Assembly (NCBI GenBank): GCA_004431415.1
Contig: QPMI01000553.1
Location: 62,001-126,000 of the forward strand
Length of the DNA: 64,000 nucleotides
DNA from: Cyanophora paradoxa CCMP329
Taxonomy: Eukaryota > Plantae > Glaucophyta
Direction of reading: 5' to 3'
Made by a program: the position numbers and the translations under genes. This document shows positions 19,058 to 41,550 of this stretch, one piece after another; position 1 is the stretch's first letter; every line of letters starts with the position of its first letter. The notes beneath the pieces are model-generated. The model was given only the letters and a program-made list of their open reading frames with translations. It ran no database searches and was not told the DNA's origin.

Positions 19058-19801
19058 TAGTAGGGCCGGTACGTATACGTCCGCCCGCCGGTTCAAATTG
19101 CCGAGAGGCCGGCGGAATTCGGCAATTTAGCATCACTGCAATTGTTCATGGGGTAGTCTGTTTTCTGGATTCGGAGATCTGGATTCGGCGCCCGGCATGC
19201 CGCATGCGCAATTTGCCACGTCATGCATGCGCAATTCCGGTTTGGACGAATTCGGCAATTTTACTACGTACGCGGCAATTTTGTTACTATCATAGAATAC
19301 TCATGATCAGCCGGCGCCTGCGCATGCAGGCCTAGGCCTAGGGCCTGCAGCCTGCAGGGCAGTGCAGAGTCACACTGCAGACTGTGCAGGGCCTGCAGGC
19401 TGCAGGCTGCAGCCTGCAGCTGCATGCAGAGACCGTAGCCTACGTACGCGTACACTGTGACAGCGCCGGTAGTAGCTATATACTGTACTAGACTCACTGA
19501 GTCAGTAGACTCCGCATCGCAATTGAGTCCGCAATGCACGCTGCAGGCTGCACTGCGGACTCAGTGCGGAGTCTGCGGCACTGTGCACAGTGTGCAGCTG
19601 CATGCCAGCCTGGCAGCGGCCAGCCTGCAGCTGGCGCGCGGCGCCGGCCCTGGCCGGGCTGGCCCAGTGGCCCAGTACTAGTCACTGAGTGGCAGCGCCG
19701 CAGATCTAGATCTACCGGTACGTATATATACCGGTACCGTCTACGTACACGCTGAGCCTGACTCAGTGAGAAGAACTTCGGAACTTCGGAAGATCTAATA
19801 A

Positions 19802-22800
19802 TACAAGCAGGGGGGCTCCGCCCCCCCGCACCCCCCCAGTGTTATTTAGGAGTCTTTGATTTCTTGTGGTCTATTCTTCTTCTTCTACGTACTACTTCTA
19901 CTACTACTACTTATTAATTGAACAAAGAATGAGAATGAAGTACTAAAGTTGTAAAGACAGAACAGAAGAAGCTGAAGCACTGAACATAAAGAACACAGAT
20001 GTGAGTGCATGGAAGATGTAGAAATTAAACACTGATCATGTAATCTGGAAACAATGCACGAGATGCAATGTAGTCCAAAGCGAGGCTTCATCATTTATGG
20101 TTTGTCATGAAACACAGTGCTTTGCAATTGGTGTTTAATTCTTGGCTGGCAAAGAAATTAAAGGGCGATTTGATATTCTTAGCTATAGCTATAGCTTTAG
20201 CCAGGAAGATGAGAAGAAGAGCTAAAGCACTGAACAATTGCAAGAAGTTTGAAATTGCACACATGAATCTCTTGTGGTTCATGATCAATCGTATTACAAA
20301 GAACGAAAATGAAGCTGAAGCACTGAAGAAGAGAGCATTTCAGAACAGATCCAGAAACAATGAAGTGATCACAAAACAATACAAAAGAAGCACATGCAAT
20401 GTATACGTATTTCAAAGTTTTGATCATTTATGTTCTAGATCTGTCATCGAACATCGAGTTTTGGTGTTAAATACTGGCCATGGCTGGCAAAGCAAGGGCA
20501 ATCCTTAGCAGGAAAGTGGGCAAGAAGCTTGAACGTTAACATGTATTGCAGCAGTGATATACTGTCGAAGTCCCTGTAGCTTTGTACCCCTGTACCTCAG
20601 TCTGCCTGTACCCCCAATACACCACCTTGCCAGCTATCTAGCCTGGCAACACATTGCGGCACTGATCATGAACAATTGCAAGAAGCTTAAGAATTGAACA
20701 CTTCAATTGGCAACTTGGCAAAAACAACCTGGCAAGGTTGTAGAAGAATTGATCATGAACAAGTCAATCATTGATCATTTTATTTCATGCATGTAACACG
20801 CAACAATATTTTATGCATGCAATGATGCCATGATGAATAATGCATGCATCATGATCAATGTAAAGATCTAGATGCCACTGATCTAGATGTTAAACAAACA
20901 ATGCAAGTACAATCTCTTCAATTTCAATTTGGCAAGTTTCTGTTTTGTTTGTTGTGAATGTGTGAACGTTGTGTTAGTGTTGTGTTTTTTGTTTTTTGTC
21001 TTGTTTTGTTGTTTGTACATTGTGGAACATATGCTTTTCTTTTTGTTGTACATGCCAAGATGTTTAATGTATTATTTATTGTTTGCCAAGAATCGAACTG
21101 GTTCTGAATCGGCACTGAGCAATCAAGTGCACCACAGCACTAAAGGGACTTTCCATTGACAGAACTGCCGGATACCCAATTTCAGCCACAAAACTCCACT
21201 CTGTGGCAGATCTTCCCACTTCATACTTCCAAGCTCACTGGCAAGGGCAGCGGCTGCCGCTACTTTTTTTAAGAAGTCACAGAGTCATACATCACTCAGT
21301 GACTTTTCCTTCTCATGTGGAGCCTGTCTCAGTGACCACAGTGAGTCAAGGCAGCACTGGCAGCCTTCAAGTGCATATCGAATTGAGTATACCAATGAGA
21401 GCGACAACTCAACCACTGGCCTGCGATTCACAAGTTCCCCACTTACCAAACATGCTGGCACGACTGTTGGCAGCCCAGGCTGGACCACCCATGGAGCACA
21501 GTCCAGTCAGTGACTTTGACTGTTCGCACCGCTCTCAATGCTGGCAGTTTGAGTCTGCCGTAGTACTAAACGGAATTTTCTTCCAAGGGGAACATGGGTT
21601 AATCTACTATGTATACAAGCAGGGGGGCTCCGCCCCCCCGCACCCCCCCAGTGTTATTTAGGAGTCTTTGATTTCTTGTGGTCTATTCTTCTTCTTCTAC
21701 GTACTACTTCTACTACTACTACTTATTAATTGAACAAAGAATGAGAATGAAGTACTAAAGTTGTAAAGACAGAACAGAAGAAGCTGAAGCACTGAACATA
21801 AAGAACACAGATGTGAGTGCATGGAAGATGTAGAAATTAAACACTGATCATGTAATCTGGAAACAATGCACGAGATGCAATGTAGTCCAAAGCGAGGCTT
21901 CATCATTTATGGTTTGTCATGAAACACAGTGCTTTGCAATTGGTGTTTAATTCTTGGCTGGCAAAGAAATTAAAGGGCGATTTGATATTCTTAGCTATAG
22001 CTATAGCTTTAGCCAGGAAGATGAGAAGAAGAGCTAAAGCACTGAACAATTGCAAGAAGTTTGAAATTGCACACATGAATCTCTTGTGGTTCATGATCAA
22101 TCGTATTACAAAGAACGAAAATGAAGCTGAAGCACTGAAGAAGAGAGCATTTCAGAACAGATCCAGAAACAATGAAGTGATCACAAAACAATACAAAAGA
22201 AGCACATGCAATGTATACGTATTTCAAAGTTTTGATCATTTATGTTCTAGATCTGTCATCGAACATCGAGTTTTGGTGTTAAATACTGGCCATGGCTGGC
22301 AAAGCAAGGGCAATCCTTAGCAGGAAAGTGGGCAAGAAGCTTGAACGTTAACATGTATTGCAGCAGTGATATACTGTCGAAGTCCCTGTAGCTTTGTACC
22401 CCTGTACCTCAGTCTGCCTGTACCCCAATACACCACCTTGCCAGCTATCTAGCCTGGCAACACATTGCGGCACTGATCATGAACAATTGCAAGAAGCTTA
22501 AGAATTGAACACTTCAATTGGCAACTTGGCAAAAACAACCTGGCAAGGTTGTAGAAGAATTGATCATGAACAAGTCAATCATTGATCATTTTATTTCATG
22601 CATGTAACACGCAACAATATTTTATGCATGCAATGATGCCATGATGAATAATGCATGCATCATGATCAATGTAAAGATCTAGATGCCACTGATCTAGATG
22701 TTAAACAAACAATGCAAGTACAATCTCTTCAATTTCAATTTGGCAAGTTTCTGTTTTGTTTGTTGTGAATGTGTGAACGTTGTGTTAGTGTTGTGTTTTT

Positions 22801-23424
22801 TGTTTTTTGTCTTGTTTTGTTGTTTGTACATTGTGGAACATATGCTTTTCTTTTTGTTGTACATGCCAAGATGTTTAATGTATTATTTATTGTTTGCCAA
22901 GAATCGAACTGGTTCTGAATCGGCATTGAGCAATCAAGTGCACCACAGCACTAAAGGGACTTTCCATTGACAGAACTGCCGGATACCCAATTTCAGCCAC
23001 AAAACTCCACTCTGTGGCAGATCTTCCCACTTCATACTTCCAAGCTCACTGGCAAGGGCAGCGGCTGCCGCTACTTTTTTTAAGAAGTCACAGAGTCATA
23101 CATCACTCAGTGACTTTTCCTTCTCATGTGGAGCCTGTCTCAGTGACCACAGTGAGTCAAGGCAGCACTGGCAGCCTTCAAGTGCATATCGAATTGAGTA
23201 TACCAATGAGAGCGACAACTCAACCACTGGCCTGCGATTCACAAGTTCCCCACTTACCAAACATGCTGGCACGACTGTTGGCAGCCCAGGCTGGACCACC
23301 CATGGAGCACAGTCCAGTCAGTGACTTTGACTGTTCGCACCGCTCTCAATGCTGGCAGTTTGAGTCTGCCGTAGTACTAAACGGAATTTTCTTCCAAGGG
23401 GAACATGGGTTAATCTACTATGTA
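19802..23424 (-). mobile_element. Head-to-tail tandem pair of a ~1.81-kb AT-rich non-coding element, probably a non-autonomous rolling-circle (Helitron-like) element
   Basis: 19802-21613 and 21614-23424 are identical except one C-run indel and one substitution that I could find. One end has a GC hairpin (GGGGGGC-GGA-GCCCCCC on the - strand, 19810-19826) followed by TGCTTGTA. No TSD, long TIR or transposase ORF. Confidence 0.65.
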
Positions 23425-23806
23425 GCAATATATAAGATCTCCAGACTCTGAGAGTCCTATATCACTGCCGCGGCGCAGTCACTGAGTCAGCAGACTCAGC
23501 ACTCACTGCAGCAGTACGTGCGCGCTTCGAGGCTCGCGACGTACGGTACTCGGCGATCATCGGACTCCGGGATCGGATCGCGAATCGCGCCTCGATCGCT
23601 CGAGTCGCATCGCCGGCGCCGAGTGTCTCAGCCTAGTATACTCAGCAACTCAGCTTGCGCGGCCGTGCACCGCGACCGCACTGGTATGATATTGATCGAT
23701 TATCAGCCGCAGCGAACGCAGGGGCTGACGCGCCCCAGCTTCTGACAGCGCCAGCTGCAGACTCTGGTCCTGGCCCGCCGCCGCAGCTGCAGCTGTCAAC
23801 GGACAC

Positions 23807-26800
23807 ATGGATAGCTCGTATAACCGGCCCGGGACTCCGGATTCTCCTTATTCGCTCGCTCCAACTGCGCCACGAATGCGGCAGTCGCCGGCCCCCGACA
23901 GCGATCGCGATATGGATCAAGGTGCGATCAAGGTCGAAATCGTCGAGCTCGATCGTTCAGGACAGCAGAAAAAGCGAGCCGCGCATCCGAGCACTTCTTA
24001 TACGTATTCTCCCATCGCCAACCCTGCAGGTGTGCTTGTAATTGACTCAGGCCGCGCGCGGCCGTACGCGTGGATCCGCGCATGCATATGCGCCCTCATC
24101 ATGATCATAAGTACTCACTAGCACTCTCTCTTCTTTCGCAGCACCAGTGCTCTCCGACAAAGACCACGAGCATGCATATGAGCGGAAGCGGGACTACAGC
24201 AGCGCCCCGCTTCCAGAGCCTGCCGCGGGATCTGCGACATATCTCGATGCGTGCGTCCAATCTACAATGATGCCTTATCAAGTTTCACTCGGGCATTAAA
24301 TTACGAGTCCAGGTACATGAGTTTCGCTCGAGCTGCGGAGACAAAGGAGGGCACAAACGCGATCGCTACCGCGAAGACCCTAATCAACGCCATCGAGCAA
24401 CAGGGCCTGAAGGTACGGCTAATCAGCGCTAACGATTGATGCACACACTGGACATTGAGCTTGCGATTCGCGATTGGCCGCAGTGCGGCTACGAGACCGA
24501 TGGAGATGCCGCCTTCCAGAATGCCGTGCACAGGAAGCGCATCTCGGCGGCAATAGAGGGCGCGCAGTGCTTCGTCGTCGTCGCCTCTGTTGGTGCGCCT
24601 GAAAGGCTTCGATCCCGACGGCTGCTCCGCTCTCCTGGCCTGACTAATTCGATCCCCCCTTTTCTTTCCAGACTGGTTCAAATCCAAGTAATTCCTCCCA
24701 TCCCCTCCCCCGCGCGCCTTTCCCTTTGAATTCCCCTTTGCACTCCCCGCTCCATGCCCCCGCCCCCGCCCCCCCCCTCCCCCCCCTCCCCCCCCGCCCA
24801 CCCTCCCCCCCCTCGCCCTCCCTCCCCCCTCGCCCTCCCTCCCCCCCTCGCCCCTCCCTCCTCCTCCTCCCCCCCCTCCCCCCGCGGCCGGCCCCCCACC
24901 CCTCCCGAATCTCCTCGCCCGCCACTCCCCCGCCCCACATAGACTTCGCCCCTTCGAAGTCTAACTCGTTGCAGGCCCTTCGAGACCCCTGATCGCCCTT
25001 TGCTGCGCAGCATGTGCATCACGGAACTGGAACATGCGAAATGGCTTGAGAAAAATATTGCATGCGTCAGCATCAGCAAGCCCGCGGCGGCACTGGCCCA
25101 GGAGGCCAAGGCCGCCGGGGCAGACACAGCGCGCATCGATGCCGCACTGGCGATTCTCCACTCCAACACCGAGTTCACTGTCCCTCGCTTCGAAGGTTCG
25201 AGTTTAATTTGTTGCCTTTTCAAAAGGGCTCTAGGGTTCGAGGTTCGATCGCACGATCTAGGGCTCAAACGCACAACGCAGATAATCACCAGCAATTTAT
25301 GATTGGCGTTGCTGAGCTGGCGGCCGTCATTCGCCCCGAGGGCACTTCCGGTCCGCTGTTTTCGATTTCATTCCGGATCCAGAAATTCCAGAGTTCTGGT
25401 CCACTTAATTCCGTCTCCTCGCAGTTGTCGAGCCCGACGCGCGGACCCCCATTAAAGCTCTAGATGTGCGCGTTTGTGATCATGAGCTGCCCGCCTGCTT
25501 CTGTTTCTCGTCTGACGGAACTCGAAACTTGGCACAGGTCATGGTTTCTTATCGCCGGTCCGTCAAATTCCGCTGCGCCACTAAAATATCGACTGACATC
25601 GAGTCTTGTCATACGAGCAGCAAGAACACGGACGGTGCGTTCTGAAGCTAGAGCTCTTTCCTCGACACCCCCCCTCCACCGCCCTCCACCGCCTCGCCCG
25701 CCCCCACCGCTCCGCCCCCGCCCCTGCCCGCCCCCCCCCCCCCCCCCCCCCCCCGCCCCCCTCCCCTCCCCCTTGCCCCCGGTCCACCGCCCCGCGCACC
25801 CGAACTGCGCTGCGCTGCGCATGCAGCCGCTGCCACCTCACTGAAATCTGTGCTTGCGATATCGATCGCCCATGCCAGAGATGAAGACAGTGTGCAAGAT
25901 TTTGGATAATTTGAACATCTCTCACTGGGTTAGTGCATGTACAATGTCGTAACGTAGTATTCAAGAACCTAACGTTAAGGATCCCTTCTGCAGGTGGACG
26001 TCAACACCGAGAACGGCATCCTTAAAGGGGTGCAGTGGTGCGTGAAGCGAGTAATACAAATTAATTTAAGCGAGTAAAATTAATTGAAGGGAAGTGGCAA
26101 GCCGTATCGTGGACAGTATACGTAGGCCTAGCTATAGGGGATATGCCCGTGCAGGAGATTTAGAAGAAATAAAGGTGTTTTGGAATATATATGAGGTGCG
26201 GAGGAGGGACGGGCCGGGGAGGACAGGGCCCGGGGGGGTGTAGTGGTGCACAAGCCTTGAAGCCTGGCGCACATCCGCCCCTTTCATTCTCGTTCCCTCT
26301 CAGGGGCAAGGCCATCGCGGCTGGAATCAAGGGCGCTTCCGTGGTCCTCGTTCTGTTGTCTCCGGAATGGATCCAGAGCACTTACTGGTACGCTTTCTCT
26401 TCATCTATTCCATCTTATTGTATATATAATTATGACCTGAGCACCGCTGAACGCGCGCAGTATTGATGGTGAGCGCGACACTTTTTGTCAACATTTTATA
26501 ATTAAGAGCAAACAAACAGTTCTTCAGCTTATTTCAAACGTACAGAATTCGACTACGCGTGCGCCCAGCAGAAGCGCATCGTCGTTGTAGAGCTTGCTCC
26601 TGTCGAGGAGCAACACATCACCATACCCCCCGACGCCACCGAGAAGCAGCGGAATTTTAACAGGTGTTTACTTATGCACTATTTCCAGGCTTCGATTCGC
26701 GCTCACAGTCAGTTATACGTAATTTATAATATACAGGCGCCAGCGTATGTGCCTCTCCGCCATCAATACTTGGTAAACTGACATACAACTCACATATTGA

Positions 26801-29800
26801 CGTTTTGCTTGTGCATGCATTACATGCATAATATGTTGACTTTATCACGGGTTTGCAGGCAGAAAGTGGCTTTTCCTCTCTTGGTCGGTCAAACGCCAGA
26901 TACACTCAGCAAGGCCATGCAAGACCTTTCCTTCAAGATGTCTGTCGATGAAATGGAGGACGCGATCCGGGTCTGTTCTTCGAATTCTATCATTTGCACC
27001 CAGTCCTGCTCTTGACTGACGCGTACGTTAACGTCCGCACGCCTCCGGTCCCTCTCCGTGCGATCGCGACTTAGTTTGATGCGGAGAAAGCACGCTTGCA
27101 CACTCAGCTCACGCTCCGCGCCGACAAGTACAAGGAAGGTCCGTTCATGCATGAAAGTGTGATCATGAAAGTCATCGCCAACACTCCAGCGCCTAGCACT
27201 TGGATTCGATGTGTCCGTGCGCTGGCCGGATGCTAAGTCCGTGAAGATCGACAAGGTCTGCGCTTTCTTCAGGCCACATTCACGTCTTCAGTGTGTCCGC
27301 AAATACTTAAGATGAGCGAACAGATCGACAAGAAGCAGCGCGCGAAGGCGGGGGCATTTCTCCTCCATGGTTTCGCGCTGCAGGAGGCACGAAAGTGGGT
27401 GGAGGAAACTGGACACATTACCCCCGCGCACCGCGGTCCGCTCGCGGCAATTCAGGCCGTTTTCGCCGTGAAATCTGTGAGCAAGGATATCATTATAAAT
27501 AATGCGTATATCGCCAGTTGCTGATTGCTTTCTGCAGGTCAAAATTGTGGAAAAGGCCCACGACAAGGGCGCTGAAAAGGCGACGGCGGCACAGAAGTCT
27601 CTTGAGCCAACTCCGGAGCACGTTGTGTGCGTTGCAAATTAAAATCGTCTGCATCCTCCAGTTTGCTGACAGATTTGATAAAAGGCTTGTCAAGCACTCA
27701 ATCGACGCTGCCATGCGCAAGCGCCGGGTTTTTGCCGGCGTTGCAAGCGTCATCGCAGCACGTGCGCTTTTTTCCGTGCACTGGACCTGCCGCGGTGCAA
27801 AGCCTGTCTAATTAACAAGCTTGCAGTTCTCATCGCGCTGACTATTGTGGCTTTTGTGATGCTTGGTGAGCGCTTGTGCGCTGCTCTAGGCCCGCCTTCC
27901 ATTGGCGTGATCATTGCAATGTGCATGCAGTCATCTCGCTCCAGCGACAAGCTGAGGCGGAGGCTGCCACTAAAAGGGCTGAAGACGAGGCCGCGAATGC
28001 GCTCCTGCAGCAAAAGGCGCGTCGGAACATGCATACATGCGCATGATCATGATCGCATTCGCTTCATTTGTCTTCATTCGCTTTCTGACGCCATCGCTGT
28101 GGTCCTGCAGAAAGCGGACGCAGCAGCTTTGAATGCAACGAACTCTGCGAATGAGGCAGAGGTGCAAAGGTTGCGGGCAGTGGACGCGGCAAATGAGGCA
28201 GAGCGACAAAGGCTACTGGCGGTCGATGCCCTCAAGAATGCGACGGAGTCCGCTCGCATAGCTGAAGAGCAACGGCTGAGGGCGGAGGACGCCTCTATTC
28301 AAGCATTAATTGAGAGGAACAACGCTTTAGCTCAAGAGCAGGTGTGCTTCCTGTGCTGCTGCTGCTGCAATCGATATCGATGCTGGATATAATAATGTGC
28401 GCAGCTGGCTGTCGCCGCAAAAATCAATGCTACTCTGGCCGCTCTGGAGGCCCAGCTACAACGCGACATCGCGACGAATGCGTCAATTGCTGCGAACATT
28501 TCGGAAGCGCAAGCAGTTCAGCAAAAAATCGTGCGCTTAACTTCAACCGATTGCAACCTGCACAAAGCTGTTGCTCGCCTCACTGTAGCGACAGATTGCC
28601 GAGGCACAAAGGGCCCTCGCTGTTGCCGCGAGCATCCTTGCCAACGAAAGCGCGATTGCTGCAGAAGTGCAGAGGTCACTGGCAGTGGCAAATGAGCGCG
28701 TGGCACTGGTCGCACGCGCCCAGGCAGAAGCATCCCAGCTGGTCGCTGAAGCTAACCTGAAGGTCGCCTTGATCCGCACAAGGCGCGCATGGCCGTCTTA
28801 TTCTATGCAATTGCGATAATGAATTCGAGCACGAGCTAATATAACATGTCGCGTTTGCAGTATTGCCGCTTCGCTTTCGAGTCAGAGTACAGACCCAGAG
28901 CGAGCAATGCTGTATGCTCTGGAAGCGATAAGCGGCAGCACAAGCTCTGCAAGGGATGCAATGGCCGCAGAGGACACGCTGCGTCAGATTCTCGAGTCGA
29001 GCAATTCCGAGTTTCTCCTGGGAGGACCTGCAACCTCTTCCACCGGACGCCGGCGCCGAGTTCTCGCAGATTCAACTTCGACTGCCGCACCTCTTATATC
29101 CGATTTCGCGGCGACCGGCTTCAAAGATTTCCAGGTATACCTAACATATACACTTCAATTGTGCTCTACGATTGTGAACTTATGCAATGCGTCCTTCACA
29201 GACCTTCTACGCCACTTCGCCTAGCGGAAATTTTACATTAATGGCTGCAATTGGAGTTCTGCCTGTTGAAGTGCCAGTCAATGCAAGCAACGTGAAAGTA
29301 ACAGTTTTCGCGGTGCGTGTTCTTTCAACCGATGTCACTGGTTTAACAAAGTGGCTGAATTGCGCAATCAGGCGCGGATTCTCGTGCATGTTCTGAATGC
29401 GCAGGAGGCAATCGAGTATTCTGTTGAAGATCAGCTGTTGTCTGGTTTGAGCAAAACGACTTTTTGGGCTTTCTACCTCGGATCGACACGCATGTTCGTT
29501 GACGATTTCGGCAATGTTTTCGTTCACGTCCGGTAAATATTGTGCCTCCGATGTCTTGGCAGCACCTTCGATATTCTCGAACGCCCCCGGCAGACGCTTG
29601 GGCCACGAGCCCCTCAAGTGTGAAACTGAGTTCGGGCCGAGCCAGTGGTTCACGTTCGAGGACGAGCGCTTTCGCAGCCTCGACCGCTCGGATGGATCCC
29701 CGATCGGCTGCCTCCCGCCTTCAACCTCTATTCTCGTCATTTATACGAAAGACAACGCCCTTGCCAAGAAGCGCGGGTGCCTCCAGAAGCAAAACGGGCC

Positions 29801-32236
29801 TGCGAATCACCTTCTAGAAGTCCATGACATATTCGTCGGCCACGGATTCGTCGCTGTTCTTGTCGGAGAGTCAACAGCGGGATGGAAAGGTGCATGCACT
29901 TCTTCTCCTGTTCTCAGAAAGATTGATATGCCACTGTCCTTTGCTAGGCTGGGAAGACAAGGACCTGTACACCGAGCAGCAACGGCTGCGAATCAGGGAC
30001 ATCTATGGCTGCTACAGTTGTGAAGAGTGGGCATCGCGAAGCGCCTTGCCCCGCGTTGCGCTTCGAATATTCAACGGGCCGCTGGCTATCCGCAATGTGG
30101 ACCTCTATGCAGGTCCGATTCGCATGTATTCATGATCATGATCATGCAATTGACTATTATATATATATTTTCTGCATGACAGGATACCAACCAAGCAGCC
30201 CCGACCTTTGCGAGTTCTATCCTACGAATTACGAGACGCTCGACCTCGGACCTGATCTCTTCGCAATATCGCGTCTGAGCGCTGATTATCCCTACCCCGC
30301 CGGCTTCGCCTTCTCCCCCAAAACGTGCACGAGCGGTGGCCAGGAGTACTTGGTCGTGGGTGGGGAGGGAATCTTCTGGCTAGGCCCTGTGGACGCGCTG
30401 TCGTCTCGTGTCCTCTCTATCCAGCACAAGACCGATATGATAACCACATTCTCGGTAGACACTTCGAACCTCGAAGTCTTTTATGACCAACGCGGACCAC
30501 AATTTCTCGCTTTCGGGACCTCGGACCTGCTAGTCGATCGGAACTGCTCAACGATCGTGGGTGTTCTCCGGCAAGATGGACGGGGAGTCACCTACGAAAA
30601 CGGCAAGGCGACCGCTGGCTACTCGTGGAACATGCTGTTCAAGATACACTTGCCTTCGGCAATTTCTCCTGGATTGTACACAAACACGACGGTGCAGCGC
30701 AGATCGGCAGACGGATCAATCATATCTGACCGTATGCGAATCATTACCATCGGAGACATAGGCGGCAGAGACGGAAATCTGGCAACTTTGACCTCCTGGG
30801 AGCGAATCAATAATGGAATCCCGTCGCCTGTGCGGTATTCGAACTTCAGCAATCCCAATTTCTCTGACGAAAAGACTGCCCCGGAGAACGCACGCGACCC
30901 AGATCTTGTGCTCGTTGACATCACACATTACGAGCAGACTCCCGGCACGGTGCGTGTCAGCACGATGCAAATGCTCGCTTTTCTTTTCGACTCCAGCTAA
31001 AATCGAACGCTGGCATCGCATAGGAGGACAAGACTTCTTTTAGCGGACTCGGCGCGCTTGTGCTCCGCAGCAGCCTTTCAAGATCAGAGTCATGTGTACG
31101 GCAGCAGCTCGTGTTCGTCGCCCTGCAACCAGAGAACGCGTTTGCGTTTTGGTCAATCGAAGAGCTTGGTTGTGCTTCAGCCTACACTGGCTCCCCCTTG
31201 AACAACCTCCGGCGAAGAAACATAGTGCGTTTTGAAAACCAAGCGCTTTTATTTTCGGCGCGTCGGAACCTGCAATCTCCAGATTGCTTTGCTAGGAGAT
31301 CGATCGGGGAGCCTCGTAGCTGTTGGCCGTGAATCGGGGGACGTCGTCTTGCATGAAATTCGAAGTCCAAGTGACATTCCTCTCAGCTCACAAACCGTGC
31401 GACGCTTGTTCTCCTTGAATCCTCTCGTTCTTTTTAACAGCTTTTCCACGGAAGGTTTCCGTAAAGGTTTTGAGCTCTGGAATCCAAACGCTGGTTCTGA
31501 AAGCGGACGGATCTCAATTGTCGATTGCAGACACCGCAGGCAACTTTGCTCGAATGAAAATTGCGACAGAGAATCTACAGGAAGCTGACCCTGCCCGGCT
31601 GCTGCTCAAGGTAAACTTCGCTCGTTGCAGTAGAGTGGCACATATACACTATCTAAATTTCGCCTTCAATTAATTTCCAGGCCACGACTCTGTATGATGG
31701 GCCTCTTGGCAATTCGTTGAGCGAACTCAATAAAGCGACGCTGAACTCCTTCGTCGCGGAAACATCAGCGAACGACGTATTCGGACCCAACGGAGGCATC
31801 TTTCTGACGAAAAACAACTCGTGTCACTTCATGATTATTGGCCAGCAAAAGACAGTAGTATGGGACGCTGACATGCAGAAAGCGCGCACAATGCTGCAAC
31901 CAACGCAAACACTCTCGGGAAAGAAACTCTTTACAATGCAGCACACGCTTGGCAGACAACAGAGAGGAGAACATGCCATGGCCACAGCTTCTACTGCCGA
32001 TCGGTGTCCGGAATGTAATAATCCCAACTTTAATTTCCGCTGTGCGCCCATGTCTGCGCTCGCAGGAGTGCATCTGTGATCGTTTCAATGCAGGGTTTGG
32101 CGAGCACGGAAAGACTGGCGGATTGATTGCTCTTAACGCGACTGGTGGCGCGCTGTTTACTAGCAGCGCGACAGGCGACGCCCGATGCCTCTCTTCTGCT
32201 ACGCTACAATTACGCAAGACGTGGTATGGAATATTA

Positions 32237-32302
<66 letters not shown>

Positions 32303-35300
32303 CAACTCATTTAATTACCCGCTGGCAGGTCGTGGCGGTCCGGAATCGAAACCCGCCCTTGGCCCGATGGAACGCCGGCCCGGGATTTCCCTTATGGAGG
32401 GGGGCAGCCAGCTGAAAGCTGGTATTCAAACGATGAAAAGCGCCATCTGAAATTCACGGTTTCTCTCACTGATCGTCCAAGTGTGGTAAAGCATGTGTAC
32501 GATAGAGATGACTACAGACGGAAGCTTAATCTCTATGAAGCCGCGGTAGATTCAAACATGTTTACCGTAGAATATCGTCCCTTTTCGTCAAGCCCGTCAT
32601 GCGTGCATCCAGGAGACCCGGTCTGGTGCGCGGAAGAGCTCAGCCGGAACAGCCAAATGGCTCCATTGTATGACTTTCTGGAGCAATGCGACGAGCTTCG
32701 CATGTGCTACGTCGCCTCAAACTTGCAACAGTTCAAACCCACAGACCCTCACTTCTTCCCTCACCCGTCAGAGCCTTATCACCCTATCGCATTTTCGTAC
32801 GGACCGAGCGGAGGCGGGTACGCCGCAATCGCTGGCGTCATCTACGCGCTTGATGATGAGGTTTGTGCAATCGCTAGCATTCCATGTTCCATGTCCAAGA
32901 TCCGCAAATGTGCAGGGTATCCCTATGTCAGACAACGATCAGTCGTGGTCTATTTTCGACAGCAACGCGAGCATCAAGGACCTTTTCACACCAAACATTA
33001 CTGCCGAGTTTTTCAAAAAAAAGGAGGATTGTTTCATTCGGATGGCGGGAGTCCGTTCTCTGCGAGAGAACGATCGGGCGATGGCCGCTCTTCTATACTC
33101 GCTTGACGGACTGGAATCAGAGGGCTGCAGGAAAGTAAAACAACCTTCGTTGCTATATACAAGTTCAAACCAACCTCTCGATGAAGTAGCCACGGACTAT
33201 TTTGTGAACGATTGGCGCCGACGTTCGTACTTTCACGTGTACGATTCGAGTCGCCCCGAATTACTTCGCGATATTTTGAGAGAGAGGCAATCAATGATGG
33301 TGTTTACATGTGCTGTCGAGCGCAGACGTACAACATTCATCTGGATTCAACTATGACGCTTCGCTTTGCTTCTTTTGCTTCAGTTCTTTCGGAGTGCTGT
33401 TCGACAGAAATCCGGATTTCCAAGACTTTGAATATAAGGATCCCTTCTTCGGAAATGACTGTACTGGCTGCTCACGGAATCGCACCATCAGGTAATGCTC
33501 AAAGTCACTCCGCCGATGCTGCTGTTGAGACGCCTTTAATTGGTGGGGCAGCACTGTTCAGAGCGGGCTGGCAGAAGGCCTCGAAACGGTTGTCTTGGCA
33601 TCAGCAAGGAAACTGGCACCTGCTCTTACTGGCGGGGCAAGCGCTTCCCAGCGAAAAATTGTCCTGTACATTGATTGTACATTGCATGGGCAGGTGGAAA
33701 GTTGGGGCCAGCCTCAAGCAATTCGAATCCCAGATGTGGATCCCTCCAATATCAAGAGAAACTTGCGCTCCTGTCGGCGCGTGCTGTATTGGGAAGTGCA
33801 ACAGCTTCTCGTCGTCGACTTGTACGCGCTCAAACAAAATGCTTAAATACCGCAAGCATGCGAAGTATATATACGTTCTTTTTCAACAGGCGCGCTGTCG
33901 TGCTTGTGGTTGAAATTCGAGATGACGGATCATTTGGAGGCTTCATTCAAATTCAACAGGAAACGAGTGCGTCTTCAAATTATGTAATATTTTAAGCAAT
34001 GCCTAAAATCGAAAAGGCATTCCGGTGCCAGGCGTGCTGCTCTCAAACCCGTCGAAAAGCAAAAGATCGATTGTTAAGGATAATCGGAACTTTGACTATG
34101 CGGACTCTACCTACCGAAACGTGAAAACATCCCGCGGTGGGTGCGTTTCTCGGCTTTTTCTTCATTCTCATTTTCGTTTTCAAGCTTCAAACTCTGCAAT
34201 CATCCTCGCAGCTCAGCTTACGGTGCACTGAATTTCTATTAATGTTTAAAATCACCTTACACCTATAGCGGCGCAGCTGACTGCTCTATCTACTTGTCTG
34301 CTGACGAGTCTTCACTGTGGATTGTGGATGCTTTTTCAGCTCGCAGATACAATTCGAAGGCCACATTATGGAGTGCATCGAATTCTGCAAGCAGATTCGC
34401 ATTCGGCAGCTACGCTCCCCGAGCATCGCAGAATGGTGCAAACTGAAATGTTGCATTCGATCTTCACTTTTGCGCATGTTTGTTTTCGAAACCGACTGCT
34501 CATTACAGGGCAGTTTCTGGCGATCTGGAAAACAAAGACGGAACTGCAGATTTTAGATCTTGAAAAGGGATTCAATGCCGATACCCTTGCGAGTCTAGTT
34601 GTTCGGACTGTGCCTATTGATGCGATCTTCGTGGATGCGACTGGGCTTGGATTGCTGCCCGCTGTTCCAATCGTCAGCAATGATGGGTGCGACGATGTCG
34701 ATGATATAAAACTGTCTTCAATATCATGTATATGCACATGCATATGCATGATATGCTAGTACTATATATATGCTGATGTTAAAAACTAGCTATATATATA
34801 GTATGCATGACTTTCTCATCAGAGATCATCTTGCAATTCGCTACAAGAAGTCCGATGGATCATTTGCCGTCAGAGTAATGGCAAGTCTTTGCCTAATGCT
34901 GGCGCAACTTTTGCTTATAATTTGCGATTGGATGGGGTTTGCGCAGGACCTTACCCAAACAGCAATCATCGCTGAGACCTGCTCGCGAGTGAGCCGTACA
35001 CTGGACGACTCGGAGATAGACAGCACTTACGGGAACTCGAACATGTCCAGTTTATCTGCACGAACGTTTTGCAAGCCGTATTTGCCAAGCGCAATCGCAA
35101 CGAACGGGCTGCCAAAACGGTCCAAGGCGGCTCGCCTTCAAACTGCACCTCAAGTTCCTATCTTGCGGCTAGTAAGAACTTCGCGTATTTCAATGACAGC
35201 GTTTGCGTACAGCCCGCACATGCAACCTAGCGATTCTATGCCGACAATGGCGTCGATCGAGTGCAAGCGAAAAGGAGGCGACGTTGTGGTCGTCAAGCAA

Positions 35301-38300
35301 GACAATGTACCTCTGTCGTTGTCTTCGTTCCCATACTTGCGACCGGAATCGAGCCCTTCCGGCGTGGCGCTTCAATTATGTGGTCGCCGTTTCGACTTGG
35401 TGCTCCCATCTGTGTTAGCTGCGCAGTTCGATATTACAGACCTGCAGCCAAACGCTGGACACGAATGCACAGCCACCTTCAGCAACGATGCCGGCACGTC
35501 GCCGACAACTTCGGCCATACTGGAGCAAAGCCTAGACGGAAGTGCAAATGTACTCCCCTACAGGCCTCTAGATATTCGTGCACCTGCTTTCGGTTTCGGA
35601 CTTTTCGACGATGGATACTGGCGCATCAAACCAAAAAACCAGGATTACGTCCCACTTGAGCCATACGACAGCCAGGTCGCGCTGAGCAACATAACAGCAA
35701 GAGCAGATGCATCTTTATTTTCTGGCTGGACGCAGCTCCCCAGCCCATACAGATCGGCGGACTTTGAGGATTTCCTTGGAAGCCAGATGCTTCCCAGCTA
35801 CTCAAGCACATTATTCATCCCAGGCGTTGATTATCCCGTCCCGGTCTCTCTGCCGACGTGCGAACTAAAGCGGCGCTATTGTGAGCTCGCTCATCTTAAT
35901 ACTGAGAAAATCCACACTTGCTGGCTTCCTGGCCTCCCGGAGTGGACCAACGTCACACTTGGCGGAGTTTTGCAAATCTCGAAGTTGTACGTTCGAATTC
36001 AGTCTTGATAGAATCCTATGAATTGATGATTCGCAATATTTATCGCAGGAATATCGAGCAAGGGTGGAATGCGACCCGTATTGAATTTCAAATCAGCGCG
36101 ATTTTCTTTTCAGGAAATAGAACCAACACAACGATTCGTATTGAGGTACGGTCTGATGACGTTGCACGCCGCGCCATGCGCGTTTGCAAATCTGCAGCTG
36201 CGTGCATGCATATGGCTAACCGTGCGCACTTGCACATGAAGTTCGACGGGATTCAAAGCACTGGTCTTTCTAATTGGAGGGACGACGGCCGACAGCGGGA
36301 CGTACTGGCCATATCTAACGCCTCCTTTTCGGGACCCTTCATTTTCAAGACGCACTACACGAACTGGCGCTCTCCACAACTGAAAAACTTCTTAACAGTT
36401 ACGGCTTCAACGTCTCGGCTCATCTCGTGGCACGGCCAGAATGTGCAAGATCTCTCCGGAATCACGATTCACGCTCGGTTCCGCGTAGTGGGTCATCCGA
36501 CAGGACGCAAAATGCTCCGCGATTACCCTACCATTCCGACTTGGGGATGTCCTAAAGCTGTACCATGCTTTGCCGCTTCAAACTGGAAATGGATGAATTC
36601 GAATGAGAAACGAACCTTCGATGCCTTCAATCCCACTGAGCGTCGTAATTTGCATAGGCCTCCGTGGTTCGTGGCCAAGGCCCGAGATTAGCGTAGGTCC
36701 GTGGTCCGGACCGAACTTTTGCACGGTTCGCGATCGTGCAGGTATCTGAAAGCGCCAGCCGGAAGCAAAGTGCTTGTGGAAGTCACATCTTTTGATATGC
36801 CACCCGAATTCTACATCGAGGTGCCTCTCTGGCTAGATCCTGGCTTGATCATGAGCCCAATCAGAGCAACAGGTCCGAGACGGTTTTCTCGAGAACTCTC
36901 CAGTTATGATGAGAGTATTCAGCATTCGAGCCAAATCTGAATATGTCTGGCTACCAACTGCACCAGCTCAAAACGTCAGTACGGGCGACGAGGCTGTCAT
37001 AGAGCTGAAGTACAAGAGCTCCGACTCAGCCAGTCCACAGTCTTTGCCGTATGTTTGGTCAGGCTTTGTGGCGCGTTTTCGAGCTCAAAGTGCGCACACT
37101 TGCATGAACATATATATATACATCTACCAGTCACTGAACGTCGCATTACATGACGCATACTCAGACCCGGCTGAACTAGTGCAATCGGACGCTCACTGCA
37201 AGTCAGCATTGTCTTGCACGCTAACTGCGACATCAGAGCACGCTACCTTCAGCGGGGGGGATCTAATGTCAAATACGAACACCCTTCAGTGGTGAGAGCG
37301 TGTACCGCAACGCATCCGAGATTCGTCTTCTCAAAGCGGGTTCCCCGTTCAGGATTCTTGTCGCGGGAGAGAATCAAGGCATAGAGATTAGTTTCTGGCG
37401 ATTCGACATCGGGCAATCGGATGATGTCTTACAGGTTTGAAACTGTCGTGACCGTGACCGGAACGAAATCCAATGGCGCTAAAAACAATGCCGTGCACTT
37501 GCAGTTATTCGATGGAACTTCGGACAGCTCTCCTTTGCTCGCTTCGCTCAGTTTTTACAATTTGAGTAGAGCGGAAATCATGCCCACGTTCATAGCAAAT
37601 GGATCGGCGTTCATTTCATATACTACCAGCTTTAGTGAGTCAACTCACGATGCTCCCGAGGGCTTTGCAGCTCGATTCAGAGCTGGTGAGCGAATGCAGA
37701 TCACTTAAGCTTACATTTGCGCCCAGTTTCTTGATCACTTACATTCGCGCCCAGTTTCATTGTCGAACGTGACGTACTTAGAGACCAGAATTCCAGCAGC
37801 TACTCGTATCAACATACCTCCTTTGATCGCCACGTGTGCGTTATCCGTTGTATTCTCCGCCAGTATCCGCTGAACAAGCGCTGATCGACGTAACGAGCAG
37901 ACGTTGATGAGGCTGCGTTTTGCGATTCATGGGATCCATGTGAGCTGAATGCAACGACAAGCTTCACCGGACTCCAAGAAGGGCCCATTGACACGAGCTA
38001 CGAAATTAACATCGCACGAGAGTGGTCAGCGTTCTGCGCCCGCTGTACATGTGCAGTGAAAGTCTCAGATTAACTGCTGATTGGATCTCATCAGGAGAAT
38101 CACGGGCCCAGTCGGCTCGACTATTCTAGTAGAGTTTATCACGTTTGAGACGTTCGTGCATTAACGTTTTTCGCACTGATTATCTATGCTACAGCTGCGC
38201 GCTAAACATTTGTACCGCCTCAGGGAGCTTGACGCCGATTTTGTATCGGTGAGTGTGAGTTGCTCTAGAACGTTTTCCGACAAACCGACGATTGGCTCAG

Positions 38301-40749
38301 ATATTTGATGGCCCGTTTTCGACTGCTCCTCGAATAGCTCATTTGAGCGGAACTTTAAGCAAGCCTCCCGCATTCGAAACATCGGGGAACGTCTGCTACA
38401 TCCGGTTCACGAGTGGTAACTATTCATGTAGTGCAGCAATGTTCGGAATATCTTTGTATTTATGAAACGGAGCGCAGACGGAACCGCAAACTTGGAAGGA
38501 TTCATTGCACAGTTTCTGGCAATCTCGCGAGACAAAGTTATTATTCTTGGTGCGTTCTTAGCGTATTCAGATGGCTCGTTCTTGGCAATGTTGATTGAAT
38601 ATTTAATGCAGATGAAGGGAGCGAATACTGCGGCGTCATGCACGCGAATTGCGTCATAAACATAGCGAAAACGCTTACGACTTTCAAGGAGGGGACCGCG
38701 ACTGGAAAACCCTGGTGCACAGAGCCGAATTTTATTAGAGTTCGTTCTTGCAATTGATCACGTCTGCTCCGCGTACGTAGGACATTTATACCGCCGATGA
38801 TGGACATTGAATTTTTAAACTTCATTCCTGAGATTGTGTTCACTAGATTCGATCTGTGAGTGCAGAGTATCTAATTTTGCCAGGGCATCTGATAACGTTC
38901 CCCAGACCGGATGATGTTCTGACGGTCAGAGTCTGTCGGTATTCATCTATCTCGTAAGAGCAGATTTCATTCTCGCGAGGGCAGATCACTGAACTCAACT
39001 ATCCCAACCTCATCGTTGCCAACCTCAGCGGCTCTGTGAGAACGCCATTTACGCTGCGACCTCGCGAAACAGCTGGACTCACGTTCTCTTTTCGCAATGG
39101 TTCGGCGGCACAGTTTACCAACAACCAAGTACATTGTCATTTACGATTTCACAGGATTCGCGGGCTCAAGTGCTGCAACTTCGCGATTCGAGGGGCACTT
39201 TATCGCCATACTGCCTGGGGATGCAGTCGGTACGCGAAAGATAGATATAAATAACTGTTGGCTCGCTGAAATAGGTTGACAGCTTTGAATTATGAATGCC
39301 CGACGTCGACGCCGGCGGTTGCCGGTTATAATTGTTGGAAGTTCGCCACCGAAAAGCGACAAACTCTACGTGATGGTCCAATCGGGCGAGACTACGAAAA
39401 TTCTTTCAATTACACGTGGTATTCTACGTCTGTCTTTGTGTTGTTCCCACCAAGAAAATCATACATCGCGACAGGGACATCCAGGCACTTTCTGGATCTG
39501 TCATTGTGCTCGAATTCAATGTTATTGACACGTGCGCAAAAAGAATTATTATATATGATGCTTGACGTGCACGTGAGAGAGAATGCATATGTCTTGCAGG
39601 GAAGAAAATTACGACTTTATTTCGGTAAGAGATTTTAAGAGACTCGTGCCCATATCTAGATCTAGATCTGTGATCCGTCATTCTTCTCGTTGCATTCGAG
39701 TACGAGTGGTTGCAGGTGTACGATGGTCCTTTAAATGTCCCGAATCCGAATGGCGGTTTTGTACGCGATCTTATACATATGCATATATCTATATCTTTTA
39801 TTCAAACGTATCGACAGTATTACGATAACGCAAGACTATTCCCCCAGCAAATCGCATATCTTAGCGGATCTATTCGCACGCCTGTACGATATCAGACATC
39901 TGGTCCACGCGCCGTCATTAGATTCACAACGGGTACGAATTCGGTCATGGCCATGAAAGTCAGATCATTTTCGCTTATCATCCGCTGCACAATTGCAGAT
40001 AAGACTGTGGTAAAATCAGGATTTGAACTTCGTTTCTACACCACTGCACTGGCCTCAAATCATGTTGATGCCATGGACACGGGCACGTAGTTGATGCAAC
40101 TCGAATCCTTTTCTTAAAGCACCCTTATGGTATCCTTGATAGGTTGCAAGGAATACAATCCTTGTCCTTTGTTCCTAAATTCAAGCACATCTTTTTTGAA
40201 TTTCGACGAATATCCGCCAGCACGTAAGGAATCGAAGTCTTGGTAATTATGAGCTTAAAATTGTTGATCTTGCTACAAAAAGCGCTTATAACCATAGCTA
40301 TTGATCGCGTTCAAGCAGGTTGATCACTTCACCGCCAGGATTCTTCCTTGAAATCGAATTTACTCTTTTCGTGTCGTGCGTAACCATTTGCATTTCACGA
40401 ATACATTCCGTTCGAGCTGATATGCGATCAGAGTGGATTCGTTCACCGTACGCAACGCTTTGTCCTTTTTGCGGAATCTGATTCGCAGCATTCAGATTCA
40501 CGATGGCTCTGCGCATATATTGAACTCAAACGTCATTGCCAATATTACTGCCGACGGCGGCGCGACACTGCTTACTCCTTTTCGGTTCTATACTAGTCAG
40601 CGATACGGCTACCTCCGATGGAATTCAGGTATCATTATAAACCCGTTTAAGCTTGCCATTCATGTCCCAGCTAAACTTTGAGCTCAGGGGATGCTTGGCA
40701 AGGGAAAATTGAAGGACGGATTCGAGCGATCAATGGTCTGCAATCGTGA
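23807..40749 (+). CDS. Predicted type-II single-pass receptor: TIR-TIR-helical linker-TM-coiled coil-beta-propeller-like-Fn3-(CUB)x5-6; dozens of short introns
   Basis: Phase-consistent splicing gives TIR1 (DAYMSFAR...ISAAIEGAQCFVVVASV...RSMCITELEHAKWLEKNIACV) and TIR2 (DVMVSYRR...GVQWGKAIAAGIKGASVVLVLLSPEWIQSTYCIDEFDYACAQQKRIVVV). These are followed by RKRR+VFAGVASVIAALLIALTIVAFVMLVISL (TM), an Ala/Glu coiled coil with many NxS/T sites, Fn3-like FDITDLQPNAGHECTATFSNDAGTSP and CUB-like repeats. Stop TGA at 40747-40749. The start and the middle exons are less certain. Confidence 0.8.
24240..25070 (+). other. TIR domain 1 of the receptor gene
   Basis: betaA DAYMSF, betaC CFVVVAS and alphaC SMCITELEHA (with the conserved Glu) lie across 3-4 exons. 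Confidence 0.78.
25460..26600 (+). other. TIR domain 2 of the receptor gene (includes 20-, 14- and 8-nt exons)
   Basis: DVMVSYRR / KNTD / VDVNTENGILKGVQW / GKAIAAGIKGASVVLVLLSPEWIQSTY / CID / EFDYACAQQKRIVVVEL. Confidence 0.82.
27715..27940 (+). other. Transmembrane helix (split over three exons) preceded by a basic RKRR motif
   Basis: MRKRRVFAGVASVIAA|LLIALTIVAFVML|VISLQRQ. The positive-inside rule implies a cytoplasmic N-terminus. Confidence 0.8.
32240..32298. repeat. (TA)n microsatellite in an intron
   Basis: Uninterrupted TA run of about 29 units. Confidence 0.98.
36600..40749 (+). other. Array of CUB-like domains
   Basis: Recurrent pattern W-I-x-P-G-x-x-I-x-x-x-F-x-x-F, then D-F/V-x-x-[IV]-[FY]DG, then IAxLSG and GFxARF. 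Examples: RITGPVGSTILVEFITFET..DFVS.IFDGPFSTAPRIAHLSG..EGFIAQF; VYDGP..QIAYLSGS..GFELRFY; LFDGTSDSSPLLASLS..EGFAARFRA. Confidence 0.8.
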
Positions 40750-41550
40750 ACGATGTTGGTTCATTCAATGCCAGGTCAACTTCAGCTGCAATTCATGATT
40801 CCTTAAAAAGCTTCTCGACAGCGCTAGCTCGGCATAGTTTTGTCTCGGTTGCAGGCTACATCTAGAATTCATATCGACTTCGGCACGACACGGAGGAGAG
40901 GGGGGAAGGGGACGGGCCAGCTGCAGGGATCCGCGATAGGCGGAATGGAGAGAGCCTCAAGCTCGGAGCTCGCGAGAGTCCCAGTCTGGACTAGAGCTAG
41001 TTTCAGCATGTGTACAGTGGGATGGGATATTGACAAAGCGATTGCCCAATATTAATTCTCCAGAGAAATCCGGAGAGACTTCAGCTTAAGCGTGAGAGGG
41101 CGGTAGAAAAGCGAATTCATAGACGCCAGTGACGTCGACGTCGACCATATTTTCGCATGCATATGGGCCCGGGCCAGCGCCACGGACAAGGACCTCTGTA
41201 TATACGTATAATATACGCACGAATATTGCACATGTATACGAATACGTATATATATACAGCAGCCTGACGGCCGCCGGGCGTGAAATCGCAAGACTGGCAA
41301 ACTGGCTCTCGATCCTGCGCATGCTTCTGATACTATCGTACGCTTACGCGCGCGTACTACGTATACGGGAGCAGCAGCGGGAGCAGCAGCAGCGCTAGCA
41401 ACGCGGCAGAAGAAGCAGCAGGCCCTCGAGCTCACGTCACGGCGTGCGTCTGGATCGGAGCGAACTGACGCTTGCGCTTTCGAACTTTAAATCTGCAGTT
41501 CCTCCAGGCCTAGGCACAGCGCTAGCTATAGCAGCTCGCGTCGCCTAGCA

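Follow-up and report, generated by a model that had tools for sequence, protein, structure and literature searches.

The glaucophyte alga Cyanophora paradoxa CCMP329 appears to carry a large gene in which an inner half of bacterial type is joined to an outer part built from Fn3-like and CUB-like modules. The gene lies within a 64,000-nucleotide stretch of contig QPMI01000553.1 (assembly GCA_004431415.1, positions 62,001 to 126,000 of the forward strand), referred to here as the window. Coordinates are positions within this 64-kb window; the gene spans 23807-40749 on the + strand, and all of its features described below lie on that strand. We lean, with moderate confidence, towards reading the locus as one Cyanophora nuclear gene of about 69 exons that encodes a type II, single-pass membrane protein of ~3,600 residues, a predicted TIR-signalling receptor with a bacterial-derived inner half. 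Profile and paralog comparisons of the predicted protein show its parts to run in the order TIR-TIR, linker, basic cluster and helix, stalk, an 'LLALEA'-type element, a beta-rich region, an Fn3-like unit and a CUB-like array. A sequence-only reading of this DNA had seen in it a new and independently assembled class of receptor. As stated, that claim is not supported by the comparisons described here: the inner half is collinear with a widespread bacterial family, so the receptor was not independently assembled, tandem-TIR members of that family exist in bacteria, and the gene has paralogs in Cyanophora. As judged from these comparisons, the eukaryotic addition is the outer portion, with its Fn3-like and CUB-like units.

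The inner half and its bacterial relatives

The linker motif encoded by exon 27292-27476 (F-L-L-H-G-x-x-L-x-E-A-x-x-W, with R, H or Q at the fourth place) was turned into a DNA pattern and scanned over one genome per bacterial species. At least 120 bacterial loci were found, against ~17 expected by chance (an expectation that is our own estimate and assumes uniform base use). The matches listed came mostly from Cyanobacteria, Chloroflexota/Anaerolineae and Acidobacteriota. Among them, the motif was located 100-270 residues from the start in 60 open reading frames (ORFs), and a strong hydrophobic helix (Kyte-Doolittle hydropathy, KD-19, of at least 1.9) followed it within 110 residues, typically at about +45, in 74 of 103 ORFs. 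When full-length members were aligned, both Pfam TIR_2 (best E 1.6e-27) and WD40 were detected in 24 of 24. Among bacterial relatives with longer heads, the head is a tandem of two or three TIR_2 domains, a TIR together with nSTAND1, nSTAND1 by itself or AAA_35; the two-TIR inner half is therefore a bacterial arrangement and not an algal invention. The FLLRG linker and the helix stand behind these interchangeable heads in loci L014, L019, L027, L076, L081, L084, L087, L099, L103 and L116, and to judge from such architectures the bacterial linker and helix behave as a reusable chassis. No description of a bacterial TIR/membrane-helix/WD40 family was found in the literature searched.

A model of the whole family was run on all stop-free pieces of 23-41 kb on both strands (721 pieces). 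Seven matches reached 3 bits or more, all of them on the + strand and all in family order (TIR1, TIR2 twice, linker, coil twice, post-coil), and none of the 721 pieces gave a match of that strength on the - strand. Comparison with this model shows the predicted inner half, from the TIRs to the post-coil element, to be homologous block by block to the bacterial family.

The TIR part was compared with a bacterial TIR model derived from 24 proteins, all of which carry Pfam TIR_2 and belong to a family that was fetched independently of TIR sequence. TIR-like module 1 (24313-25195; exons 24313-24412, 24484-24592, 24672-24687 and 24975-25195) matched this model at 24520-24588 (profile 40-62, 9.1 bits) and at 25009-25089 (profile 69-95, 4.5 bits), the latter with the invariant Cys, Glu and Lys aligned. 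TIR-like module 2 (25538-26970; exons 25538-25634, 25879-25928, 25994-26037, 26304-26387, 26461-26468, 26546-26663 and probably 26859-26970) matched at 26308-26382 (profile 45-69, 11.0 bits) and at 26530-26622 (profile 69-99, 9.8 bits). The - strand gave no match to the TIR model. The second exon of module 1 resembles the TIR_2-positive exon of module 2 with z = 6.4, and the invariant Ser, Cys, Glu and Lys of the bacterial family are present in both modules. Glu E81, invariant in the family alignment, aligns with the Glu of SMCITEL in module 1 and with that of STYCIDEF in module 2. We conclude that the two predicted tandem TIR-like domains keep the family-invariant Cys-x-x-Glu, which in module 1 occupies 25015-25026 within CITEL (25015-25029). 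In characterised TIR NADases, enzymes that cleave nicotinamide adenine dinucleotide (NAD+), the Glu that follows this Cys is catalytic. The sequence-only reading had assigned an alphaC Glu to both domains, and this is borne out, for module 2 once an 8-nt exon (26461-26468) is spliced in; only then are CIDEF and the Ser-x-x-Cys-x-x-Glu spacing restored. The frame of module 1 is likewise kept only by way of a 16-nt exon, 24672-24687.

Profile searches with Pfam, PADLOC and NCBIfam were made exon by exon; as a positive control, Pfam WD40 was detected on a single exon piece of a neighbouring BEACH-WD40-FYVE gene. In these searches the sole match within the TIR modules was of Pfam TIR_2 (PF13676) to the 27-residue exon at 26305-26385, with E 0.028 and 15.4 bits against a cut-off of 28 (profile 43-66); the other TIR-module exons matched nothing in the three collections. 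The earlier assignment of two TIR domains is thus indirectly supported, by collinear matches to the bacterial TIR model in both modules and by a single sub-threshold Pfam hit on one exon. A feature search of the ESM Atlas with the last TIR1 exon gave no usable result, and PDB sequence and profile searches with the CUB-like and TIR exons were empty or returned chance matches.

Downstream of the TIR modules, a helical linker (27081-27476) combines a bacterial-type His-Thr block at 27081-27131 with the FLLHG..L.EA..W motif at 27354-27398. Its segment 27336-27428 matched the family model with 20.4 bits (profile 149-179), a match that is partly circular because the bacterial family was fetched with the same motif. 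The His-Thr...Arg-Ala block at 27081-27131 forms a weak collinear match of its own between TIR2 and the linker (profile 131-147, 1.9 bits). An RKRR cluster and a single membrane helix of about 25 hydrophobic residues can be read directly from the DNA at 27716-27865, as 27716-27761 plus 27827-27865, split by a 65-nt intron (27762-27826). The helix is the sole real hydrophobic peak of the model (KD-19 3.22). A second peak is false because it falls inside a 66-nt GC-AG intron at 34881-34946 (GCAAGT...CAG) and is absent from both paralogs; removal of this intron joins FAVRVM to DLTQ, matching the paralogs. Hydropathy of the gene model revealed no hydrophobic N-terminus.

The helix is followed by an Ala/Glu/Gln-rich helical, coiled-coil-like stalk (27931-28762; introns 28017-28110, of GC-AG type, 28342-28404 and 28531-28594), which holds seven NxS/T sequons where 2.1 are expected and gives weak collinear matches to the bacterial post-helix coil at 28108-28323 and 28604-28765. 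Next comes a post-coil helical element (DPERAMLYALEA ... EDTLRQIL; 28861-29134), the counterpart of which precedes the WD40 repeats in the bacterial family; 28862-29020 matched the family model at profile 247-302 with 11.2 bits and an independent E-value (i-E) of 0.0021 among the 721 pieces. The positive cluster lies on the TIR side of the helix, and the model has one NxS/T sequon before the helix (602 residues) and 32 after it (3,010 residues). A basic cluster on the TIR side together with sequons that mostly follow the helix fits a type II protein with cytosolic TIRs. The RKRR-plus-helix segment, the sequon-dense stalk and the type II layout of the sequence-only reading all stand: the TIRs precede the basic cluster and single helix, and the sequon-rich stalk and CUB-like array follow.

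The outer part and the Cyanophora paralogs

A search of 1.84 billion representative proteins with exon 34953-35984 returned only two relatives, both from Cyanophora: P0001 (EukProt tig00000139_g8297.t1, 1,003 residues, E 1.3e-12 with phmmer) and P0002 (EukProt tig00001181_g7420.t1, 282 residues). P0001 aligned collinearly by tblastn at 33700-33822, 34267-34437, 34463-34687 and 34827-35516, with a best E of 9e-23 and with no frameshift or stop across 33700-35516, and the joins 34435/34509 and 34686/34823 and the join across 34881-34946 restore continuous P0001/P0002 sequence. The last blades and the Fn3-like unit with its surroundings are 31-50% identical to the paralogs, the order of parts (blades, Fn3-like unit, CUB or CUBs) is the same and the C-termini are similar. 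Unlike this gene, the paralog models, which are partial, contain neither TIRs nor the membrane helix; and of the roughly three CUB-like units in P0001 one reaches Pfam significance, against none of the six or seven here. By these likenesses the predicted gene is a member of a Cyanophora family with at least two paralogs. When homologous proteins were sought for P0001, for the last TIR1 exon and for the post-coil exon, the result was either P0001 itself or nothing, long relatives being outside the length window searched.

The outer region opens with a long beta-rich stretch (29202-34880), the last part of which (33694-34880) carries blade-like 'DG ... hydrophobic' repeats in common with P0001 and P0002. 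The sequence-only reading had called this stretch propeller-like. The region is beta-rich as described, but Pfam searches of its exons (up to 345 residues) gave no WD40 or PD40 match, and the WD40 part of the bacterial family model had no match of 3 bits or more anywhere in 29-41 kb. An AlphaFold2 model of P0001 had a mean predicted local distance difference test score (pLDDT) of 38, with low confidence over the blades and only residues 400-538 usable. With no WD40 or PD40 signal and with unusable structure models, 'propeller' is a guess. A 255-residue exon gave no usable match in an ESM Atlas feature search (all scores below 0.9) and no related loci in bacterial genomes. Four exons searched by tblastn against plasmids gave chance matches only, among them a Kovacikia match that was discarded as a short-chain dehydrogenase. 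A likeness of 34947-35040 to the C-terminal tail of the bacterial family was not significant.

The predicted Fn3-like beta-sandwich (35145-35540) is assigned by homology to P0001 residues 400-538. In the P0001 model this segment (pLDDT 60-79) retrieved Fn3 domains at Z 9.0-9.4 and a root-mean-square deviation of 2.4-2.8 over 85-95 residues, and nearly all top rows were Fn3. The fold is seen on the paralog model, to which 35145-35540 is 31-37% identical. The Fn3-like unit that had been proposed is therefore supported indirectly, through the paralog, the exon of this gene being placed by homology.

P0001 also provides the reference for the CUB-like array, since its residues 600-694 match Pfam CUB (PF00431) with E 3.7e-12. 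When this CUB domain was compared with 36000-40800, six high-scoring segment pairs (HSPs) of at least 18 bits fell on the + strand and one on the - strand, against a mean of 0.28 in 120 shuffles, and the sum of the top eight bit scores was 158.5 against 120 +/- 5. Six clear CUB-like units and one weak unit were distinguished. Unit 0 (36049-36666), placed by motif order, is the weakest and may hold an in-frame intron. Unit 1 (36742-37089) ends in GFVARFRA, and P0001 CUB residues 620-635 match it at 36746-36793. Unit 2 (37165-37685) offers a choice of middle exon, 37353-37425 or 37435 onward, and unit 3 (37901-38530) has four exons that match P0001 595-694 in order, with collinear HSPs at 37954-38028, 38099-38152 (23.9 bits), 38334-38423 and 38456-38512. 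Unit 4 (38612-39229) has the least certain exon model. Unit 5 (39283-40082) is followed by a GC-AG intron (40083-40142), and unit 6, curated by hand, runs with the stop codon (40747-40749) from 40143 to 40749 and is matched by the P0001 CUB at 40323-40370 (21.2 bits). The five to six CUB-like repeats of the sequence-only reading thus persist, as six or seven units recognised by their similarity to the CUB of P0001 and not by Pfam. An alignment of the CUB-like exons, itself poor, gave no signal against the P0001 CUB with hhalign.

In unit 2, the alternative exons (37294-37486) both begin after the same split Trp codon. Exon 37353-37425 is the more CUB-like and dead-ends at a stop; the exon at 37435 onward continues the frame. 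The pair may represent mutually exclusive exons or a decayed duplicate.

Gene model, genomic setting and expression

Between 26000 and 40750, stop-free pieces of at least 80 residues number 44 on the + strand and 29 on the - strand (Markov shuffle mean 23), and those of at least 200 residues number seven and zero (shuffle mean 0.3); the longest measures 418 residues on the + strand, 181 on the - strand and ~176 in Markov shuffles. Gene models were sought by dynamic programming with self-trained splice and codon scores and were curated in part by hand. From ATG 23807 to TGA 40747-40749 a stop-free GT/GC-AG path exists, with 62-70 exons depending on settings; the preferred model, with GC donors allowed, has ~69 exons, ~68 introns with a median length of ~68 nt and ~3,630 codons, and its open exons reach 1,164 nt. 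All searches begin with the start codon and first two exons (23807-24250), which encode a Pro/Ser-rich N-terminal region before TIR1. The gene end proposed earlier agrees with the stop codon and the P0001-like C-terminus. Of the single frame that was said to link all parts, the stop-free path is recovered and the single transcript is not.

Because a search of this kind always yields some path, outside support was sought in host intron style and in joins continuous with the paralogs, described above. An intron of the adjoining host BEACH gene (74 nt, GTGCTC...CCCAG) resembles those of the candidate gene in style. In the preferred model, acceptors are CAG in 62 of 68 introns and donors GTNCG in 34 of 68, and GTGCG[CT] occurs 25 times on the + strand and nine times on the - strand. 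Direct reading of the DNA finds short introns with GTGCGC- or GTGAGC-type donors, CAG acceptors and exact frame joins, for example at 27762-27826, 28342-28404 and 28531-28594. There are at least three GC-AG introns (28017-28110, 34881-34946 and 40083-40142) and two micro-exons, of 8 nt (26461-26468) and 16 nt (24672-24687), the former flanked on both sides by strong splice signals. During curation a 33-nt intron (40087-40119) was dropped in favor of the 60-nt GC-AG intron 40083-40142, and an intron proposed by the search at 35307-35426 was rejected because the stretch aligns with P0001.

The gene is contained in a block of 41-56% GC at ~18.5-41.5 kb, set inside DNA of 65-81% GC. Such a low-GC island could mark DNA that arrived recently, or else a region in which mutation or recombination runs differently. 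To the left lies the BEACH-WD40-FYVE gene (15067-17924, + strand, 92% GC at third codon positions, GC3) and to the right a DHHC gene at 43.6-44.4 kb. Elsewhere in the window a myosin-head exon occurs three times with nearly identical peptides, at 1268-2227 (- strand), 47174-48295 (+ strand) and 58139-58870 (- strand), each with Pfam Myosin_head at E ~1e-37. Just upstream of the gene, 19801-23430 is a tandem duplication of two AT-rich, non-coding-looking copies of ~1.81 kb. Segments of 300 nt sampled from the two copies show 100% identity at an offset of 1811-1812, so that the duplication is either very recent or an assembly artefact. Two introns of the TIR part contain C-rich (CCN-type) simple-repeat inserts of 73-75% GC, at 24700-24940 and 25660-25800, in a gene that is otherwise ~50% GC, and read contigs from 2012 break exactly at these inserts. 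An intron of the outer region holds a (TA)n microsatellite at 32230-32290.

In four 2012 runs of one sample, contigs match 24100-30099 without differences. As they also lack joints, the sequence there is reproducible as DNA.

Several observations weigh against the single-gene receptor reading. On the gene's own exons there is no significant Pfam match to CUB, Fn3, WD40 or TIR; for CUB, the exon pieces gave none with the E limit raised to 10. AlphaFold2 modelled 30185-30949 as all-beta at an unusable pLDDT of 34, which leaves the propeller unproven. Whatever DNA it is given, the gene-model search yields a path, so the exon model is provisional in its details, and the splicing that the frame demands is unusual, with two micro-exons (8 and 16 nt), three or more GC-AG introns and the unsettled unit at 37294-37486. 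Exon GC3 is 0.57, compared with 0.78-0.92 in the flanking host genes. Almost none of the sequence words of 24100-30099 occur in 17 runs of the species that are probably RNA, and in the four runs that do hold them the contigs are DNA-collinear, without joints. A search with exon 34953-35984 found no gene model of this copy among the EukProt proteins that include its paralogs. Finally, the NADase and receptor roles are inferred, and rest wholly on analogy with SARM1, plant TNLs, Thoeris ThsB and Dictyostelium TirC.

Some of these observations bear on whether this copy is alive. It may be a silent or decaying paralog of a functional family of inverted TIR receptors, with blocks that can still be read and no full-length protein. 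The absence of RNA words and of a public gene model, the unusual junctions, some of which work only through the 8- and 16-nt exons, and the unit at 37294-37486 with its dead-end alternative exon (37353-37425) give this a real, if minority, chance of being correct, and the GC-rich inserts within the introns at 24700-24940 and 25660-25800 point the same way. On the other hand, a stop-free path of ~3,600 codons persists with exons of up to 1,164 nt open, P0001 is followed over 33700-35516 with the frame unbroken, the invariant TIR residues are intact in both modules and the micro-exons have strong splice signals on both sides.

Proposed origin and function, and comparison with known systems

For the gene read as a single TIR-signalling receptor, we propose the following history. 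The frame would have come from bacteria and acquired short introns of host type, its propeller would have diverged past recognition and eukaryote-type Fn3 and CUB modules would have been added at the outer tip. In the mechanism that we envisage, the CUB and Fn3 outer modules would bind a ligand carried by a microbe, virus or other cell, and binding would cluster the receptor via its stalk. Clustering would join the cytosolic TIR pairs and could thereby lead to Glu-dependent NAD+ cleavage or to ADP-ribose-derived signals, and this output might trigger a stress or death response. Oligomerised TIRs are active in this way in SARM1, plant TNLs and Thoeris ThsB, where they cleave NAD+ or make ADP-ribose-derived signals. 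A further analogue is the activity of oligomerised TIR in Dictyostelium TirC, in which E162 is the catalytic Glu (PMC13142454).

It is also possible, though in our view unlikely, that the gene is real and is not an NAD-cleaving immune sensor, and serves instead as an adhesion, mating or matrix receptor with its TIRs as scaffolds. CUB and Fn3 are general binding modules, the TIRs of animal Toll-like receptors (TLRs) and IL-1R act as scaffolds, and no defence genes were found beside the locus, whose neighbours encode BEACH-FYVE, DHHC and myosin proteins. Yet the Glu that never varies in the bacterial family (E81) and is catalytic in characterised TIR NADases (E162 of TirC, PMC13142454) is present in both algal TIRs, and nSTAND1 and AAA_35, both typical of conflict systems, also occur as heads on the bacterial frame. 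That two or more genes, one for a cytosolic protein with both TIRs and another for an unrelated Fn3/CUB protein that is secreted or membrane-bound, have been wrongly joined is highly improbable. For such a reading, no transcript links the TIR and outer parts, the P0001 model begins inside the outer region without TIRs and the exon model of 29.2-33.5 kb is without outside support. Against it, the membrane helix is itself interrupted by an intron and shares its reading frame with the preceding linker exon and the stalk that follows; single bacterial proteins show the same succession of TIR, His-Thr block, FLLxG motif, helix, coil and post-coil element; and 23.8-40.75 kb contains no long non-coding gap and no change of strand.

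If the gene is expressed and active as a receptor, a eukaryote would have retained a bacterial membrane TIR sensor intact and then fitted it with ligand-binding modules of eukaryotic type. The immune role of TIRs would become open to study at a eukaryotic cell surface outside animals, the bacterial TIR/membrane-helix/WD40 family would gain its first experimental handle and the case would bear on how often receptor-type innate immunity arose from prokaryotic parts. We can only speculate, and rather doubt, that the implications extend further: glaucophytes may have taken up a bacterial TIR/helix/propeller sensor, expanded it to a multigene family and re-tipped it with animal-type Fn3 and CUB modules, giving a third independently built 'Toll-like' surface immune system, inverted, with NADase output and housed in low-GC islands of a 70% GC genome. 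For annotation, the locus shows that long Cyanophora genes, with micro-exons and GC-AG introns, escape current models. Neither Cyanophora TIR receptors nor a TIR-plus-CUB protein was found to be described in the literature searched.

Among known systems, the closest comparison is with the uncharacterised bacterial TIR/FLLRG-linker/helix/coil/WD40 proteins (loci L003-L108). The predicted algal protein is like them in its N-terminal TIRs with invariant Ser, Cys, Glu and Lys, and in the His-Thr block, the FLLxG..L.EA..W motif, the basic cluster with one helix, the coil and the 'LLALEA' element, which follow in the same order. The bacterial proteins are 850-1,200 residues long and end in ~14 canonical WD40 repeats, whereas the algal gene, in which no WD40 is detectable, has a far longer beta-rich region together with one Fn3-like and six or seven CUB-like units. 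The spacing from motif to helix also differs (~88 residues in the alga, ~45 in bacteria), and the algal side has ~68 spliceosomal introns.

Dictyostelium TirC, a membrane-tethered TIR NADase derived from a bacterial TIR-STING (Culbertson et al. 2026, PMC13142454), provides a second parallel. In both cases a bacterial-type TIR has moved into a eukaryote and is tethered by a membrane helix, and Glu-dependent NADase activity is the likely output, on the algal side by analogy. In contrast to TirC, which has an N-terminal helix, one TIR and no ectodomain (PMC13142454), the algal protein has its TIRs ahead of the helix and a very large outer part behind it.

Animal Toll-like and IL-1 receptors resemble the predicted algal protein as single-pass proteins in which an extracellular binding part is coupled to cytosolic TIR. 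They differ from it in being type I, with a C-terminal TIR, an ectodomain of LRR or Ig type and one scaffold TIR, whereas the algal TIRs precede the helix; the exon-wise searches of the gene gave no LRR or Ig profile match. The TIR lineage also appears to be different, because the algal TIRs match the TIR model of the bacterial family, as judged from profile matches. Animal CUB surface receptors such as neuropilins, CDCP1 and cubilin, and the complement proteases C1r/C1s/MASP, share with the algal protein the use of CUB or CUB-like arrays as an extracellular binding part, but none of them has a TIR, and the algal units are too diverged for the Pfam CUB model.

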